From positions 507,183 through 571,182 of the forward strand of contig NW_003314277.1 of the NCBI RefSeq assembly GCF_000143415.4: a DNA stretch of 64,000 nt. Reading direction: 5' to 3'. Below the pieces are notes generated by a model. The model searched no databases, was not told the DNA's origin, and saw only the letters and a list, made by a program, of their open reading frames with translations. Source of the stretch: Selaginella moellendorffii (Eukaryota; Plantae; Lycopodiophyta). Position 1 is the stretch's first letter. Each line of letters starts with the position of its first letter. Shown one piece after another: positions 7,548 to 16,875 of the stretch. Both the position numbers and the translations under genes were made by a program.

Positions 7548-9916
7548 AAGGGAACTGTCATCATTGTGAAAAGCTCGAGAAAAGTTGACAACATGGACCA
7601 TTTGTGCAAAAACCCAAGTAACCAATGACATCATGATGAAGTTGAAATTGATGAAAACACCTCTTGTTAAGTTATTTGCTAGTTGAGTGTAATGAAGTGG
7701 TTGAAACCTATTGGGTTGCTGATAAAGAACTTGTGAATGCAAAATAGAATCAGCTTGCTTGAAACTAGTCATTGAGATCAAAGTTTATTGTAAATGTCAC
7801 TCAAGAGGAGCTTGCTTGAAAAAAACTATTGATGTTGTTGTCAAACAATTTGGTAGTGGAATAAGACCTGTTGATATTGTATTTGATTAGTCCAAACCAA
7901 TCTTTGTACTAGAAATAGTCAAGCTAGTTGATGTTGCAACAAACACCTAAATAAAGGCTTCAAAAATATGAAGTACTTGTTTCACATCCTTAAAACAACT
8001 CTATAAAGGTTGGAAGCTAAGAGTAGTTGTCACTAGCTTGATTGTTAAACTTGAAATGGTTGGAACTAAATCTTATTGTAGATGTTCAACCTTTTTAGTA
8101 GTTGTTGCTTGATGAAAACCATCCTCTATCAAGTTATAAGATGCAACCTTTAACTCATTGCAAGGTAGCTCTATTGCACAAAACCCAAGTAAATCAAAAT
8201 CATCTTCAACAAAAGTTTCCAAAACCAAAGTCAAAATTAACATGTATGCTTGGATAACCTAGGAACTTATCTAAGTTTTCAATCTTTAAGCACTAGTTGG
8301 AACCATAACATTCAAATAAAACTGAAGTGGTTGAGGCAATCAATAAAGTAATTAATGGAGCACTAGCCATTGCAAGATTAAGAAGGCAACTGTCAAGAAA
8401 CAATTGTGTGAAGACCCCTCGTGCTTTTGATGAAGTTAGCCAAGTGTTTGCTAACTAATCATAACCAATGTTTATGTAGATCCATTGCCTTATTGCACAA
8501 TGCTCATCATCATGATCGTATTCATCACATGCATAAAAAAGATGTTGGTATGAATTGTAATCACTTGAATGCTGTTGTGATGCACAATAACCACTTGAGC
8601 TTGAATATGGAGGTTTGTATGAAGGATAATTATTTGATTATGAATATGCCTATTGCTGCCCAAACTGCTGACTCTGTCTAGTAGGTACATCTTGATATAG
8701 ATATGTTGCATTGAAGGTAGTTTGAGATCCTTGCATATCTTGCTCTTGCTGATGATGACTCCTTTGTTCTTAAGGTAGAAAGCATGGTGATTGTGGAAGC
8801 AGTTAAGCATGGTACACATTGTTGATAATAGGCCCTAGTTCTTGCAATCGCTTTTTATCTTGCGCAATAGCTTCTTTCATTGTTGCTTGCAATGTTGATG
8901 GATCTTTGTACCAAATTCACCTATTAAATTTGAATGCAAAAAGTCTATATAAGACTTCACCACTCATAGACTGTTGTTATCAACTCCATATTCTTGGCAC
9001 CGTGCATCATACACCTAAACTCTCTCATTATAGGCTTGGATAGATTCATTTGGTCTTTGTTTGAATGCGTCTCACTCTATCATTACCATGTCCTTTGTTA
9101 TTGTAGGTTCAAACCACTTCAAAAACATGATCTTGAGCATCATGAGTAGAGGAGGTGATTCCATATTCATCATAGCAAACCATGAATCAGCTTCATCATG
9201 CAAAGTTAGGAGGAAATACCTTGACTGCATTGCTGAATTTAGCACTCCAAACCCTCTCAACAACCTTTTTACCTTTGTAAAATGCTGGCAGGGATTTTCT
9301 GCCTTGTAGCCATAATATCTTAGAAGAATTGTGAGCAAATGTGGATCCATTGCTACCATTGGAGCTGTTGACTGAACTAAATCTCCTTAAAGTGCTCAAT
9401 CTTGAAAGTGTTGTTTATAATGCTGTTGTCGTGAACTTTCCAGGTATTGCATGTTCTTGTGAGCTTTAGGACCTCTTTTGATATTCGGCTTTGAACACAA
9501 CATTGGCAATCCAGAATATGCAAGCATCTGACCAAACCTAGGCACCTTAATGTTGCAAGTTCGAAATTCAAGGTTGAGCAGCATCCATGCAGCTGATATG
9601 GAACTCTTTTTGCAATATTTGCCTTGTGATCCTTAGATGATACGCAAGGTTTTGCTATCCATGAATCAAGTTGCTCCTCAAACTCTTAAAAGCTTCAAAA
9701 TGATGTTGAATATGGTTAGATAGCCATAGGGCACCCTAATCAACCAAATTCACTAAGATAACCATAGGTCACCCAAACAAATTGCAGCCATTCTTCCACC
9801 ACATAACCTTTAGGGGCAGCAGCAGCTCCTTGTCTTGTGCTCAGGGTTTGGCAATCGAGGTAGATCAGACCCCCCCTCAACATCCCAAGGTTGCCTAGAT
9901 TCTACCTGGATTGCCA
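7548..9916 (-). mobile_element. Degenerate Ty3/Gypsy-like LTR retrotransposon internal region (gag)
   Basis: Gag-like peptides YGYKAENPCQHF and LTLHDEADSWF...LKIMFLKWFEP (9072-9359); many stops; PBS-like TGGCAATCCAGGTAGAATC on the minus strand at 9898-9916. Confidence 0.55.
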
Positions 9917-10025
9917 ATATTAGATTTAATCTTAGCATGCAGGCACTGATTTGTGATGAAGTCTCTCGTTTTTCAATCCCAAATGTCTGGGAAATTTGAT
10001 TATCATAATTGTATGAACAAAGGTG

Positions 10026-10076
10026 AGTACATGCTCAATAGTGGAAGTTCCAGTGTTCCACTATTGAGCATGTACT
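10026..10076. repeat. Perfect 21-bp inverted repeat (hairpin) with 9-nt loop
   Basis: AGTACATGCTCAATAGTGGAA-GTTCCAGTG-TTCCACTATTGAGCATGTACT; second copy near 14439-14489 with one mismatch. Confidence 0.95.
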
Positions 10077-10242
10077 ATCACATTCAACACAGAACTTGTT
10101 TTTTCATATTGTCAGACTCACTTTGCAGTAATTTATTCCATCTCAACACGTTTGTTCTTATCGAGAACAGACTTAGTCTACTCTGAACGCACCGGCAGCC
10201 TTTCAGTACGTTTTCCTTGTCCTCTGGCTTACAGTCCCTTGG

Positions 10243-10249
10243 TATAAAT
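10243..10249 (+). promoter_or_regulatory. TATA box of cysteine-rich peptide copy 1
   Basis: TATAAAT about 80 nt upstream of the ATG; retained in copy 2 (14262-14268, minus strand). Confidence 0.6.
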
Positions 10250-10328
10250 TTGTGAGTGTTGTTCCTCAATTCGCCAATCCTCATCTGCTCGTTCCAAGTT
10301 CATTAGTATGTTTCTCTTCAACAACAAG

Positions 10329-10568
10329 ATGAAGCCTGTTGTGCTGGTTTGTCTCCTCATAATGGCTCTTGTTTTTCAGGGCTTCCACTTCAACGTTCTC
10401 TCTGAATCTTGTAATCCTGGGGACAAAGTCTGCACTGGCAAGATATATGGGAAACTTAGTGGTCATAACTGTCAGAGGAAAGGTGGGAAGCAGTATGGAT
10501 ACCAGGGCAATTGTCTGCGTATCAACCAGGCGATCGGATATGAGGGAGGATGCTGCTACTTGAGCTGA
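10329..10568 (+). CDS. Secreted defensin-like cysteine-rich peptide, copy 1 (79 aa)
   Basis: Hydrophobic signal MKPVVLVCLLIMALVF; mature region has 6 Cys including GNC and terminal CC. Confidence 0.8.
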   Translation: MKPVVLVCLLIMALVFQGFHFNVLSESCNPGDKVCTGKIYGKLSGHNCQRKGGKQYGYQGNCLRINQAIGYEGGCCYLS

Positions 10569-10658
10569 ATGAGTCGGAATGACTTGAAAATTAATAACCA
10601 TAAATAAATCTGGTTTTTGGCTTGAACAATAACTGCCCTAGGTGCACCTGAGCGAGAA

Positions 10659-10760
10659 AATGGGGAGATGGGGCGGCTTTGAACAGGATCGCATATGGAG
10701 CGCATCACGGATCCGTCGCATCTTCAGCTTTCTGGGTCTTCCAGAGTTGTTCATAGTGCT
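10659..10760 (+). pseudogene. 5' fragment of the F-box gene
   Basis: Encodes MGRWGGFEQD...ERITDPS...HIFSFLGLPELF with deletions, matching the start of the gene at 13052. Confidence 0.8.
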
Positions 10761-10896
10761 ATATATATCATTGTAAGCGTAGAAATAAAAGCACCAAAGT
10801 TCTTACAAGGTTTAAAGGCTGAAATCATGGTTCAATCAAGAAAGTGCAAAAAACAAAGCCTACTAACTCCAAATCAGTGCAAGAATAAGTAAGTGA

Positions 10897-11679
10897 CATC
10901 TTGTTGCTCAGCAGACTTGTTAACAGAAACAGACTAATCAACTTGAAATGAGTCATGAATGGAGGAGCAACATCCCAATTTTTAGTGTTAAGAAGTTACC
11001 CTACAAGCCTGGGCTGGGGCAATACTATTATACCATGTGTAGCGGGCATTATTAAATCATGCGTTGGGAAAACTTCAAGTAGCTATAAAAGCTAAATAGT
11101 ACATTTTCGACTCCCTAAATGAACTAAAGCCTTAGGAGGAAATGTAAAAAAGAGTCAACTGGAATGTTGTCCATCTCTAATGTCATTGTAGCCATCATTG
11201 AATAAAGTCAAATTAATCAAATCCAATCTGACAGCATTCGTCTTCCGGCTCTCAAGCAAATTCAAGGCATAATATTCAGAATGTTTTAGTTATGTACAAA
11301 ATTCTGATAAAAACCACTGGTCATAGCCCAGTCAGGCGTGGTTGTAAGGGTCCTCCTTGGGAAGCTTGGAGTTTTGAGTAATTTATTCATGAACAAAACT
11401 CAAACACCACATAATTCTTCTTGGTATTTATTACATTATACTCCATATCAGGTGCACACACCACCTGCACAATATGTTGCAGTCGTTATAGCAACCCGTG
11501 ACAGTCGGGTTCTTGCATTGCGCACATGTTTGCTTCATAGTGATGGAGAAAGTTATCACCGTTTGAGTGTTGTATATGCTAACGTTTCCTCAGGCGAATA
11601 CAGTACATCCAAAGTTTGGGACCGAACCACGCTTATATGCAGCTCATAGGAATTTGTACCCAGAACAGGAAACATTCCA
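10897..11679 (+). repeat. First copy of ~780 bp direct duplication (partner 14570-15344)
   Basis: Near-identical from CATCTTGTTGCTCAGCAG to AAACATTCCA, with a few short indels. Confidence 0.95.
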
Positions 11680-11729
11680 TTCACTAGTATGATCTGAAAA
11701 TTTCTCGTTTCCTACATATGGAGATCCTG

Positions 11730-13052
11730 TTAAGGCTTGGCAGTTAGGCTGGGTATCACCACATAATTGCACTCAATATCCTCGTTCTCCATGTTCTCCA
11801 TGCAGCAAGTATACCACTTGGACAGAGCAAAGTCGTACGCAACAGGAGGCCACACCCCATGGCTTTCCTTCCTATAGAAAACCGAGATGAAAGCGGTGTC
11901 CTCGACCAGCCTCACGGTCATATCCTTGTCCCCCACTGACAAACAACAATTGGGTCCAAACAGGTCCGTGGACAGAATCCGCGACACCAAGACCCACGTT
12001 GAGTTTTCCTGTTTCATCTCCCAGATCGCCACTCCAATGTCTTCAAATGTCTCTGCATTGAACATGAACGATGCCCAGTAGCATTTCCCCTTGTACATGA
12101 AGGCACCTATGTATCCAAAAGACCAGTTTGCCCAGCTATCGTCTTCCTGTTCTTGTTCTTGTTCGTTCCGTGCTGGTGGCGAGATAGCTACATGAGACCA
12201 AGCTCTGGAATGCGGATCGTAAGCTGGGAATATGTTCTCCCCAGTGTAGAAGAAAGCACACCCTCGGAGAGGTGATCCCAATGAGTTTGAAGTGCTGAAG
12301 AGCGGGCCTTCATGCCAAGAACACGACTCTGATTCGTACTGCAGTGAGCAAATTTGGTCGTCATCATCATCTTCTGTCGGGCCTTCAACAGGCGTCTGGT
12401 ACTTCTGGTACAGTATCACGACCTGGTAAGAGCTACTGTCTGCGTTTATTTCTGCTTCCATGGAGATGTTGAGGTAGGCTGGGCGTGGACGATCCGGAGA
12501 GGCAATTGGAGCAGCCGGTAGTGCCTTCCACATGTTGGTGATCGGGTTTCCCACAGCTAAAGTCACCGAGTCTCTATGTTCCATGAGCATGCCACAGACA
12601 AGTCCATTGGAAGAACACAAGCCCACGAAACGCGAACCTGATGGGCCCAATGGAAGACTGCATCTCTTACGTTGGTTCAAGCTCAGGTGTGTACGCCATA
12701 GCTCGGTGTGATTCTCCAGCTCCATGCCATAATCAAAATGCTCCTCGTCATAGCGAAGCTCCCTACAGAGCCACTTGCTTCAACGATCATGATGAAAGCA
12801 GCAAGCTTACCGGTCAACAGGCGGATCCGTCCGCACTCTGAGCACAGCCCAGGGTTTGAGCGATGGCTTGTACAGCTGCACGAAACGAGGAGCGAGCACA
12901 GCATCATACCAGGACTTGCAGACAGCCCGCAATGTGAACAACTCTGGAAGACCCAGAAAGCTGAAGATGTGGAGCACAAGCGATGGCTCCGTGATGCGCT
13001 CCAGATTGCCGCAGCGACCCCCATCCTGTTCAAAGGCGCCCCATCTCCCCAT
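11730..13052 (-). CDS. F-box protein with C-terminal FBA/kelch-like domain (424 aa)
   Basis: Exon 13052-12811 carries the F-box (LHIFSFLGLPELFTLRAVCKSW); a 48-nt GT-AG intron 12810-12763 gives an in-frame join (VDR|ELRYDEE) to exon 12762-11730 with SSNGLVC and VGNPITNMWKALP. Confidence 0.85.
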
Positions 13053-13276
13053 TTACTCACTATTAGGGTTTTTGACTTTAAACGTAGTGCAGCTGGAACC
13101 GCACTACAAGCTTAAATAATGCAGATAAGGGCGCAGACAAGAGGTAATGTATGAGCTGGCCGTCAGTAGAAAGGCTGTGGAGCTTGCTTGTTGGAAGGGC
13201 AAGGCACCGCGACAGTGAGTTGGGATCGGAGGCTACTGTTTCTCTTAGTGCTCTGGATCGGCTCTGTAGCGACAAG

Positions 13277-13410
13277 ATGAAGGTGAAGGTTGTTCTGGTC
13301 TGTTTCCTTTTGATAGCTCTTAGCTTCTACATGACTTTTGCTTTGGAAGGCGACTACTTCAACATTCTCAAGCTTGCAGCCTGTGATGAAGAGGACAGAG
13401 CCTGCACAGA
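13277..13410 (+). pseudogene. Divergent third cysteine-rich peptide copy, truncated
   Basis: MKVKVVLVCFLLIAL...YFNILKLAACDEEDRACT resembles copies 1 and 2, then runs into an F-box fragment. Confidence 0.7.
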
Positions 13411-13413
13411 TCT

Positions 13414-13860
13414 GCAGACAAGCCCACGAAACGCGAACCTGATCCATGGGCCCAATGGAAGACTGCATCTGTGACGTTGATTCAAGCTCAGGTGTGGACG
13501 CCATAGCTCGGTGTGATTCTCCAGCTTCATGCCATAGTCAAAAAGCTCCTCGTCATAGCGAAGCTTTCTTAGTAACACTGTGAGAATCTACAGAGACTTT
13601 GCTCAGTTTGCTTCAATGAGAGACTAAGAAGCAAACGAAGCTGGTCAATAGGCGGATCTGTCCGCAGCCTGAGCAGGGCCCAGGGTTCGAGCGGTGGCTT
13701 GTAGCCTTGTACAGCTGAGCGAAACGAGGAGAGAGCACAGCATCATACCAAAACTTGCAGACAGCCCGCATTGTGAACAACTCTGGAAGTTCCACAAAGC
13801 TGAAGACGTGCCAGAGCACAAGTGATGGTCCGTGATGCGCTCCAGATTGCCGCAGCGAGC
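13414..13860 (-). pseudogene. Truncated, frameshifted F-box paralog
   Basis: HVFSFVELPELFTMRAVCKFWYDAVL and LRYDEELFDYGMKLENHTELWR match 12600-13020; the C-terminal two-thirds is missing. Confidence 0.85.
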
Positions 13861-14569
13861 AGGGCAGTTATTGAAAGTGTTCAAGACAAAAACCAACAAA
13901 CTTTTATTTATGGTTATTCATTTTCAAGTCATTCTGAATCATTCAGCTCAAGTAGCAGCATCCTCCCTCAAGTCCGATCGCCTTGTTGATACGCAGACAA
14001 TTGCCCTGGTATCCATACTGCTTCCCACCTTTCCTCTGACAGTTATGACCACCAAGTTTCCCATATATCTTGCCAGTGCAGGCTTTGTCGTCATCATCAC
14101 AAGATTCAGCGAGAGCGTTGAAGTGGCAGCCCTGAAAAACAAGAGCCATTATGAGGAGACAAACCAGCACAACAGGCTTCATCTTGTTGTTGAAGAGAAA
14201 TAGACTAATGAACTTGGAACGAGCAGATGAGGATTGGCGAATTGAGGAACAACACTCACCAATTTATAGCAAGGGACTGTAAGCCAGAGGACAAGATAAA
14301 CATTCAGACTGAAAGGCTGCCGGTGCGTTCAGAGTAGACTAAGTCTGTTCTCGATAAGAACAAACGTGTTGAGATGGAATAAATTACTGCAACGTGAGTC
14401 TGACAATATGAAAAAACAAATTCTGTGTTGAATGTGATAGTACATGCTCAATAGTGGAACACTGGAACTTCCACTATTAAGCATGTACTCACCTTTGTTC
14501 ATACAGTTATGATAATCAAATTTCCCAGACATTTGGGATTGAAAAACGAGAGACTTCATCACAAATCAG
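13861..14569 (-). repeat. Right arm of inverted duplication
   Basis: Reverse complement of 9946-10639. Confidence 0.95.
13943..14182 (-). CDS. Secreted defensin-like cysteine-rich peptide, copy 2 (79 aa)
   Basis: Intact ORF, 69/79 residues identical to copy 1, TATA box retained. Confidence 0.8.
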   Translation of the reverse strand: MKPVVLVCLLIMALVFQGCHFNALAESCDDDDKACTGKIYGKLGGHNCQRKGGKQYGYQGNCLRINKAIGLEGGCCYLS

Positions 14570-15344
14570 CATCTTGTTGCTCAGCAGACTTGTTAACAGA
14601 AACAGACTAATCAACTTGAAATGAGTCATGAATGGAGGAGCAACATCCCAATTTTTAGTGTTAAGAAGTTACCCTACAAGCCTGGGCTGGGGCAATACTA
14701 TTATACCATGTGTAGCGGGCATTATTAAATCATTGTGTTTAAACATGGCTTGATCGTTGCGAAAACTTCAAGTAGCTATAAAAGCTAAATAGTACATTTT
14801 CGACTCCCTAAATGAACTAAAGCCTTAGGAGGAAATGTAAAAAAGAGTCAACTGGAATGTTGTCCATCTCTAATGTCATTGTAGCCATCATTGAATAAAG
14901 TCAAATTAATCAAATCCAATCTGACAGCATTCGTCTTCAGGCTCTCAAGCAAATTCAAGGCATAATATTCAGAATGTTTTAGTTATGTACAAAATTCTGA
15001 TAAAAAAACACTGGTCATAGCCCAGTCAGGCGTGGTTGTAAGGGTCCTCCTTGGGAAACTTGGAGTTTTGAGTAATTTATTCATGAACAAAACTCAAACA
15101 CCACATAATTCTCCTTGGTAATTATTACATTATACTCCATATCAGGTGCACACACCACCTGCACAATATGTTGCAGTCGTTATAGCAACCCGTGACGGTC
15201 GGGTTCTTGCATTGCGCACATGTTTGCTTCATAGTGATGGAGAGTGTTGTATATGCTAACGTTTCCTCAGGCGAATACAATACATCCAAAGTTTGGGACC
15301 GAACCACAACACAAGCTTATATGCAGCTCATAGGAAACATTCCA
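14570..15344 (+). repeat. Second copy of direct duplication
   Basis: Matches 10897-11679. Confidence 0.95.
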
Positions 15345-16260
15345 CGCCCAGCTGGTATGATGCTGTGCCACTCACCAATTTTTTCAATCAATGACATTAG
15401 AGATGCTCCTCAACCTTGGAGCACTACAGCAAGGCCGTGCCGTGCACGCCACCATCGCCACCACTGCGGGTTACATAACATAGGCTCGCCCCGCTACAAA
15501 ACATGTCACCGGGGCAGCTATTGCCAACACCAGCATATCCTATAAAGCTGAGCTGGCGAAAATCACTAGCAAGTTTACACCTGTTGCTAATTTTATACAT
15601 GAAATGGACAAACGTATGCTTATATAATTGGTTTGTCCTTCCCTATGGATCTTTGTTATATCAACTTACATGGTAACTTGCAAAGGCTAACATCAGACAA
15701 AGAGAAGAGCTAGTGTTTTGCTATTGGAGTGGAGGAAAATGGCTCGTGGAAGGATACTTCTTGTGATTTTGATGAGCACCAGCATCAATTGTTCCACGCT
15801 GGGCTCGTTGTCAGTGATGAACCAGCAGGCCGAGCTTGGGAGCTTGTTCCAAGGCAGCGTGTCTCCGGGAGGTCCTTCAATGCATCGACAGCCAGAATGA
15901 GAAGCGCCCGGATAGACCGACGAGTGTGGATCAGGAAGGCTCAATCGGAAATGAAATGTTCATCCAGGGTCAGGCTAGTCCATCACCCGGCCCATCCAAG
16001 GACAAAATGAATCTTCTTGTTAATTATAAGATATAAGTAATATATTTAGAATTGACAGAGCAAACTTTTTGATTTTTTAAAAATCAACTTGCATTATATA
16101 AGATTTACATGGTCCTTATATAAGAACAAAATTGTTTCTTTCCAAAGTAAAATCCAATTCCGTCATTCCTTGGATAAGCTGCCTTGCAGATGGAATGCTA
16201 TCCCAATCCATAGAATTGTGATGGAAATTCCTTAAACTTCGATCTCTCTTGCGTGCATTT

Positions 16261-16875
16261 TTAAATACCACTTCCAAATCTATATTTGGGAACGGACAAG
16301 ATGAGACAAGTGTAAAGCAGCATCCCTAATCCCCACACATTGCTGGCTGTGATATAGCACCATTGAGCATCGAGCATCGCTTCGGGGGACATATGATCCC
16401 ACGTCTCACCCCCACACTCGTTCCATGGATCCTTTATCCAGCAAGCCATCCCAAAGTCGGACACCTTTAGGACATAAAACTTCCCAGGTCACGGGTACTT
16501 CAGCAAAACATTCGCAGGCTTCAGATCACAGTGGATGATCTCGTTATCATGAACTCTCTTTAACGTCTTGGTGAGAGTTATGACGATCTTTGCAGATTCT
16601 TCCCCATCAAGCTGCCCCTTGTACTTGATCCGGTCGTGAAGGCTGCAATTGCACAGCTCAAGAACAAGGTGGTACACCTCCCCGTACTGATTGGGCTCTT
16701 CTTGTACGATCTGCTCAAAGTGGACTCATCCAAACACCTCTAGCATAACCATCACTCGAGCTTCAAACAGCCCATCGGACCCATGGACTGTCTTGATCAC
16801 AAAAACCTCATCACTCCTTTGGAATGCCATTGCTTGCCTTCCACCCCAATCGATTTCTCTAGTCTATAGTTCTTT
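16261..16875 (-). pseudogene. Ser/Thr protein kinase pseudogene (CAMK/CDPK-like)
   Basis: YRLEKSIG, VFVIKTV, HLVLELC, IIHCDLKPANVLL, SDFG, MSPE, NVWGLG motifs; in-frame TGA at 16489-16491 plus an upstream stop and frameshift. Confidence 0.8.

Follow-up and report, generated by a model that had tools for sequence, protein, structure and literature searches.

Probable passive co-duplication and independent decay of a cysteine-rich peptide gene and an F-box gene in Selaginella moellendorffii

Why does a gene for a small cysteine-rich peptide lie beside an F-box gene again and again in the genome of a lycophyte? The question is raised by positions 9946-15344 of a 64,000-nucleotide stretch (hereafter, the window) of the Selaginella moellendorffii scaffold GL377581.1, which hold three copies of the peptide gene and three of the F-box gene. 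An earlier note on this DNA had proposed a recognition or killer-protector module, with passive co-duplication as the null explanation. Our analysis favours the null, to which we give a probability of about 0.7: the two neighbours were copied together passively and then underwent birth and death independently, and the pairing looks inherited rather than being a working toxin-antidote or self-recognition unit. We favour this reading because an unrelated cation-efflux gene was copied along with the pair, the decay of the two genes is independent, the ratio of non-synonymous to synonymous substitution (dN/dS) of the F-box gene indicates plain purifying selection, and the compartments of the two products are predicted to differ.

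The window contains two intact peptide genes (pep1 and pep2) and a truncated third copy (pep3); of its F-box copies, LOC9641606 is intact, whereas B and F′ are 5′ fragments (Table 1). The positions and distances that the earlier note had given for the three peptide copies beside F-box copies were all reproduced, and the intact F-box gene is indeed enclosed by the arms of an inverted repeat (A and A′, ~700 bp each). In alignment, the pep1-B and pep2-F′ junctions are alike, running from the peptide stop through ~70 nt of common 3′ flank and the F-box 5′ untranslated region (5′UTR) to the ATG, after which each carries its own later deletions. As they have one common junction, both derive from a tandem peptide-to-F-box cassette. 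The ATG of B lies 92 nt past the pep1 stop, and F′ begins 85 nt past the pep2 stop. The third pair is head to head, with 224 nt between the ATG of pep3 (13277) and that of the intact F-box gene (13052); pep3 retains the signal segment and the first two cysteines and is cut off after ~46 codons, where it abuts F′. The true homology of the copies puts the arrangement far beyond coincidence.

Table 1. Features of the peptide and F-box cluster in the window and state of the related loci
Feature	Position or scaffold	Strand	Content (related loci: F-box gene)	Evidence (related loci: peptide gene)
Inverted-repeat arm A	9946..10639	+	Promoter region, pep1 gene and ~70 nt of 3′ flank	93.7% identity to reverse complement of 13861-14569
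pep1 coding sequence	10329..10568	+	79-amino-acid (aa) precursor	Open reading frame (ORF), cysteine pattern, dN/dS 0.34 against L002 homologue
B, F-box 5′ remnant	10651..10759	+	5′UTR, ATG at 10661, ~33 codons (internally deleted), truncated at 10759	Alignment; tree with intact gene (98/90)
Repeat X	10897..11652		Just 3′ of intact F-box gene	Direct repeat of 14570-15336
LOC9641606	11730..13052	-	Intact F-box gene with putative beta-propeller, 424 aa	100% identity to P0001; F-box above Pfam cut-off
pep3	13277..13415	+	5′ fragment of third peptide gene	Profile E 5e-8; groups with pep1/pep2 (87/87)
F′	13418..13858	-	Truncated F-box copy	Pfam, alignment
Inverted-repeat arm A′	13861..14569	-	pep2 gene with promoter and 3′ flank	Repeat comparison with arm A
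pep2 coding sequence	13943..14182	-	79 aa	ORF, comparison with pep1
Repeat X′	14570..15336		Second copy of X	Abuts arm A′ exactly at 14569/14570
Locus L001	GL377593.1		Intact	Decayed copy, same position as in L002; one cysteine lost, deletions
Locus L002	GL377565.1		1-nt deletion in exon 2	Intact homologue, convergent, 115 bp beyond F-box stop
Locus L004	GL377582.1		Intact, 42-46% identical	Intact 130-aa ORF 1.3 kb upstream, and decayed copy
Loci L003/L005 (haplotype pair)			Degenerate	None within 10 kb

The adjacency is a property of the family and extends beyond the window, which is new. F-box relatives were collected by a word-based protein search, and the 10-kb flanks of each were fetched and searched with the peptides and a peptide profile; the search for peptide homologues thus covered the window and these flanks. 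The word-based search found only six annotated relatives, at five loci, all in S. moellendorffii. At four of these five loci, that of the most distant paralogue (L004) included, a peptide homologue lies no more than 1.3 kb away. The pair is present at four unlinked loci, with peptide homologues adjoining F-box paralogues on three scaffolds besides that of the window, and the claim that the pairing persists through several duplication rounds was borne out. L001 was considered as an allelic haplotype of the window and rejected, as its neighbouring genes differ and its flanks show no homology.

The related loci also correct the picture of the F-box subfamily, adding one hidden frameshift and one probable mis-annotation. 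The L002 F-box gene (SELMODRAFT_402137; P0003, 382 aa) carries its 1-nt deletion, relative to L001, around 10890-10910; the annotation masks it with an artificial intron that skips ~40 codons, and the gene is probably a pseudogene, or else the assembly is in error. At L004, the intact 130-aa ORF encodes a long propeptide besides a signal segment and the shared cysteine core (with HNC, YxG and GCCY motifs). The decayed copy is colinear with it over the whole span between promoter and 3′ flank, but has lost its ATG; 17 nt separate the end of its 3′ flank from the start codon of the F-box gene. An annotated minus-strand gene at L004 7990-9119 (195 aa, no Pfam match) overlaps the plus-strand peptide ORF at 8317-8709; this model is probably wrong, because the overlapping ORF has the signal segment and conserved cysteine core. 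Both L003 and L005 contain additional F-box exon-2 fragments at 8415-8770, ~1.5 kb 5′ of their degenerate F-box genes, and local fragment duplication seems typical of the subfamily.

What was copied at these loci was more than the pair. L001 and L002 are young (dS 0.14-0.28), so their flanks can be traced, and homology between them also spans other flanks and fragments of an unrelated cation-efflux gene, which lies upstream of the L001 F-box gene. The duplicated blocks therefore exceeded the gene pair, and neighbours hitch-hike. Past the L002 peptide gene, the stretches 12584-13428 and 13552-13748 hold cation-efflux (MTP-type) fragments and, after them, an extra F-box fragment, which shows a larger duplicated block from an L001-like locus.

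After copying, the two genes did not share a fate. One partner is dead in every tightly adjacent peptide/F-box pair: pep1 and pep2 survive next to dead F-box copies (B and F′, respectively), the intact window F-box gene stands next to the dead pep3, and at L004 the F-box gene is intact and the proximal peptide copy dead. L001 and L002 form a classic case of reciprocal loss, the former with F-box intact and peptide dead, the latter with peptide intact and F-box frameshifted, and the surviving partners are now on different scaffolds. At the level of the locus, both genes are intact in the window, 0.9-1.2 kb apart, and at L004, 1.3 kb apart; no tight pair is intact.

The trees of the two genes are coarsely congruent. 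In the F-box tree, B groups with the intact window gene, to which F′ is also nearest; in the peptide tree, pep3 groups with pep1 and pep2 (values in Table 1). Both trees have L004 as the outgroup and keep L001 and L002 apart from the window clade; support for pairing these two (84/86) comes from the F-box tree alone. This shows that both genes duplicated as a unit and were then amplified locally. The earlier note had put forward linkage and tree congruence as a check on the module; linkage at four of five loci and coarse congruence were indeed found, but the congruence is compatible with passive copying and selected linkage alike and does not separate the two.

Are the peptide ORFs genes at all? 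pep1 and pep2 are single-exon ORFs, 87% identical, each with a hydrophobic, signal-like N-terminal segment at residues 3-18 (modelled as a helix at 3-22) and a basic, glycine- and tyrosine-rich mature part with the pattern C-x6-C-x12-C-x13-C-x12-CC. Each has a TATAAAT ~85 nt upstream and an AATAAA ~35 nt past the stop (10243-10249 and 10603-10608 for pep1). The ORFs are absent from the NCBI gene annotation, exact-product look-ups with five versions of the peptide ORF, used as a stand-in for expression, found no identical product recorded in any assembly, and protein databases gave no relative. Moreover, the divergence of the pep1 and pep2 coding sequences (5.4%) is not below that of their flanks. 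All this would fit a region of decaying duplicated DNA around one real F-box gene. We consider this very improbable, the least likely of the readings weighed here, and take the peptide ORF to be very probably a functional gene, because dN/dS is 0.34 at a dS of ~0.6 (pep1 and pep2 against the L002 homologue), the six cysteines are invariant across the four homologues compared, and the dead copies (L001, pep3 and the proximal L004 copy) differ plainly from the intact ones. Even the L004 homologue retains all six cysteines together with the HNC, YxG and GCCY motifs, and TATA boxes and poly(A) signals are conserved among the peptide copies.

The intact F-box gene comprises exon 1 (13052-12811), a GT-AG intron of 48 nt (12810-12763) and exon 2 (12762-11730). 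Its exons were searched individually; the spliced product is the database protein P0001, which the splice sites fit. Exon 1 scores 34.6 bits against PF12937 (cut-off 24.3) and 33.4 bits against PF00646 (cut-off 20.5), and P0001 scores similarly. Exon 2 reaches 19.5-21.9 bits against the At3g26010-like beta-propeller PF24750, under its cut-off of 25. F′, which is ~80% identical to this gene and scores over the curated Pfam F-box cut-offs, runs from codon ~6 of exon 1 across the intron and ~44 codons into exon 2, and carries frameshifts. The dN/dS, ~0.19 for the F-box gene and 0.18-0.3 across the F-box genes, shows ordinary purifying selection without sign of an arms race. By its F-box domain, the protein is a putative substrate adaptor of a Skp1-cullin-F-box (SCF) ligase. 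Such an adaptor would be cytosolic or nuclear and the peptide, by its signal-like segment, secreted; the two would then have no compartment in common unless there were an uptake step.

These findings bear on the idea of a functional two-gene module, in which the F-box protein would recognise the neighbouring peptide or the peptide's target and linkage would be under selection, possibly with matching at the level of the locus and not of each cassette. The adjacency at four of five subfamily loci, across all duplication rounds, speaks for it. So does the window itself, where intact copies of both genes, one or more of each, survive within 1.2 kb, as well as the character of both families, which are lineage-specific, multi-copy and rich in pseudogenes. 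There are precedents in Caenorhabditis tropicalis (PMC12680543) and at rice qHMS1 (PMC10657391). Several observations weigh against passive co-duplication. pep1 and pep2 differ at 13 nucleotides, which fall in 10 codons that all encode a changed amino acid (dN 0.070, dS 0.010), and 6 of the 13 are within the loop that joins the first cysteine to the second; the promoter halves of the two arms differ by only 2.9%. In a neutral simulation, so few synonymous changes arose with P = 0.025 to 0.13. This excess hints at selection for diversification of the peptide, and is suggestive but not significant. The tight tandem layout, in which the peptide stop is followed within tens of bases (~90 in the window) by the F-box ATG, is common to the window cassettes and L004, and has thus been kept despite F-box identity of 42-46% and saturated dS. 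A spacing of tens of bases kept since the deepest split of the family is long for two unrelated genes. Finally, the adjacency has been kept in three orientations: tandem, convergent and divergent.

Against the module stand the reciprocal loss at L001 and L002, which put the surviving F-box and peptide genes on separate scaffolds, the dead partner in each tightly adjacent pair, the plain purifying selection on the F-box gene, the co-duplication of an unrelated neighbour and the expected difference in compartment. A true two-gene lycophyte module, with an F-box adaptor controlling the orphan peptide or its target, is in our judgement unlikely. The same low probability covers, taken together, its proposed forms (a killer-protector pair, a self/non-self system or an ancestral dicistronic unit) in which the cassette would have spread because it was selfish or selected and not by hitch-hiking. 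The earlier note's recognition or killer-protector module accordingly gains nothing from these data: hitch-hiking, dead partners, reciprocal loss and dN/dS count against it, as do the expected difference in compartment and a peptide that is no demonstrable defensin.

The close spacing might instead reflect regulation. In an ancestral overlapping or dicistronic transcription unit, or with the F-box promoter inside the peptide gene, adjacency would mirror joint transcription and not a partnership of proteins. The distances agree with this: the peptide stop lies ~90 nt from the F-box ATG in the window cassettes, the peptide 3′ flank ends 17 nt before it at L004, and the space is too small for an independent promoter and 5′UTR. 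Between peptide and F-box ATG, both window cassettes and L004 have a short poly(A)-signal motif, AAATAAATCTG, common to their peptide 3′ flanks. The F-box-proximal peptide copy of L004 has lost its ATG, and the F-box gene there is still intact. However, no extant copy has both genes intact in the tight layout, and no tandem peptide remnant was found upstream of the F-box genes of the window, L001, L002, L003 and L005; the absence from the first three counts against regulatory coupling in particular. The many ATGs in the peptide ORF would also hinder translation of a downstream F-box frame. Coupling of this kind is thus a doubtful explanation, about on a par with the module, and passive co-duplication remains the reading that we prefer.

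What is the peptide? The earlier note had called it defensin-like, a label that did not hold. Pfam gave no family for pep1 at E ≤ 1 and none for the L002 and L004 homologues at E ≤ 0.1; no peptide matched the defensin profiles (Gamma-thionin, Defensin_like, AtDEF-like, SLR1-BP), and the CxxxC and CxC motifs are absent from the pep1, pep2, L002 and L004 peptides. A word-based protein search with pep1 returned no candidates, and an exhaustive HMMER profile search of 1.84 billion representative proteins returned no credible relative; its single match, P0007, a 1868-aa tandem-repeat protein, was rejected as spurious, the score being a sum of weak repeat matches. A profile search of the PDB gave nothing below E 0.5. 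Language-model look-alikes fall in defensin-type clusters, at scores (0.79-0.85) that are chance level. AlphaFold2 models are of low confidence, with a mean predicted local distance difference test score of 51.7 for the full precursor and 49.3 for the mature domain, too poor for a fold search; in the mature part they contain only strands and no helix. The generic features of secreted cysteine-rich peptides are present: small size, an N-terminus that is signal-like by sequence and an even number of conserved cysteines. We therefore place the peptide, predicted to be secreted, in the broad class of plant secreted cysteine-rich peptides and not among defensins, in a family apparently restricted to S. 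moellendorffii.

Within that class (DEFL, LCR, SCR and other cysteine-rich peptides), the likeness lies in the small single-exon precursor with its signal-like N-terminus and even cysteine number, the basic glycine/tyrosine-rich mature part, the tandem and inverted local duplication with pseudogenes, the amino-acid-changing divergence of recent copies and the fact that such genes are left unannotated. The peptide differs from known families in lacking a Pfam or PDB match and a detected relative outside S. moellendorffii, in its C-terminal CC and in its cysteine spacing, which is 6, 12, 13, 12, 0 in pep1, pep2 and L002, and 10, 13, 10, 15, 0 in L004. The missing CxxxC and CxC also set it apart from the cysteine-stabilised alpha-beta fold of defensins.

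The locus recalls S-RNase/SLF (SFB) self-incompatibility in that the gene of a secreted protein is linked to multiple, partly degenerate F-box copies within a rearranged region. In that system, the secreted partner is a T2 ribonuclease and the F-box genes form a large SLF array; here, the predicted secreted partner is a 55-residue cysteine-rich peptide (from a 79-aa precursor) without an RNase match, a single F-box gene is intact and under purifying selection, and the pair occurs at several unlinked loci and not at a single S locus. No S-RNase/SLF-like system is known in spore plants. In Brassica SCR/SRK, the linked partner is an S-domain receptor kinase, whereas here it is an F-box protein.

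Toxin-antidote elements with F-box antidotes are closer in layout. In C. tropicalis, F-box antidotes degrade linked toxins, and the toxin/F-box module has been duplicated repeatedly (klmt-1/kss-1, pzl-1/kss-2 and hyde-1/kss-3; PMC12680543); in rice qHMS1 HPT/HPA, the antidote HPA is an F-box protein (PMC10657391). Common to these elements and our locus are tight linkage of an F-box gene to a second gene, repeated duplication of the module and lineage-specific families with fast turnover (PMC12680543, PMC10657391). Their toxins are intracellular (tRNA-synthetase paralogues, an RNA helicase), whereas the partner here is predicted to be secreted; and toxicity, rescue or drive was shown genetically for them, whereas our locus is known from sequence and has no tight pair intact. 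The likeness is one of layout only. Birth-and-death clusters of plant F-box genes offer a parallel in their local fragment duplications, pseudogenes, lineage-specific subfamilies and purifying selection on the survivors; they differ in that here one unrelated small neighbour gene accompanies nearly all members.

Passive co-duplication suggests the following history. The window would be a rearranged local cluster that goes back to one ancestral pair of neighbouring genes in S. moellendorffii, a lineage-specific gene for a secreted six-cysteine peptide and, tens of bases downstream, an F-box gene with a putative beta-propeller. Because they lay so close, segmental duplications would have copied both jointly, several times, to other scaffolds and locally within the window, where three cassettes would have arisen before a recent inverted duplication of ~700 bp and a direct repeat of 750 bp. 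After every duplication, each gene would have survived or died independently of the other, which would leave the present window with one working F-box gene, two working peptide genes and the pseudogene debris of the other copies. The peptides would most likely be apoplastic defence or signalling peptides with a hint of diversification, and the two genes would have separate functions, without interaction between their products.

Read in this way, the locus is a worked example of neighbours that hitch-hike through segmental duplications and then decay independently, and it adds to a model lycophyte an unannotated, apparently species-restricted family of predicted secreted cysteine-rich peptides. 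Were the module real after all, it would give the first example outside seed plants of a peptide/F-box module for recognition or of the toxin-antidote type, and would bear on the idea, put forward for the nematode kss/fars-3 modules, that such systems arise from linkage already in place.

The repeats of the window show some further features. X and X′ form a direct repeat of ~750 bp with 97-100% identity in blocks, with indels. The ORFs of X matched no protein family in Pfam, and no other copy of X was found in the window or in the fetched related loci. A transposon origin of the inverted repeat is not supported: a target-site duplication is absent at 9946/14569, and X has no further copies in the DNA examined. 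Inside both inverted-repeat arms, ~250 nt upstream of each peptide ATG, lies a near-perfect hairpin with a stem of ~21 bp (10026-10076 and 14439-14489), of which 86 nt fold at -37.9 kcal/mol; an Rfam search of 9000-16500 gave only chance-level matches, to the hairpins and of the microRNA-precursor type. An ORF 5′ of each peptide gene, at 9953-10186 (+) and 14562-14329 (-), contains the stretch GKFDYHNCMNKG, which has a weak likeness (profile E 0.12) to the part of the peptide core that surrounds the third cysteine; these ORFs may be an older peptide relic within the arms. Beyond the cluster, at 16489-16677 (-) of the window, a short ORF with the protein-kinase catalytic-loop motif HCDLKPANVLL probably represents one exon of a kinase gene nearby.

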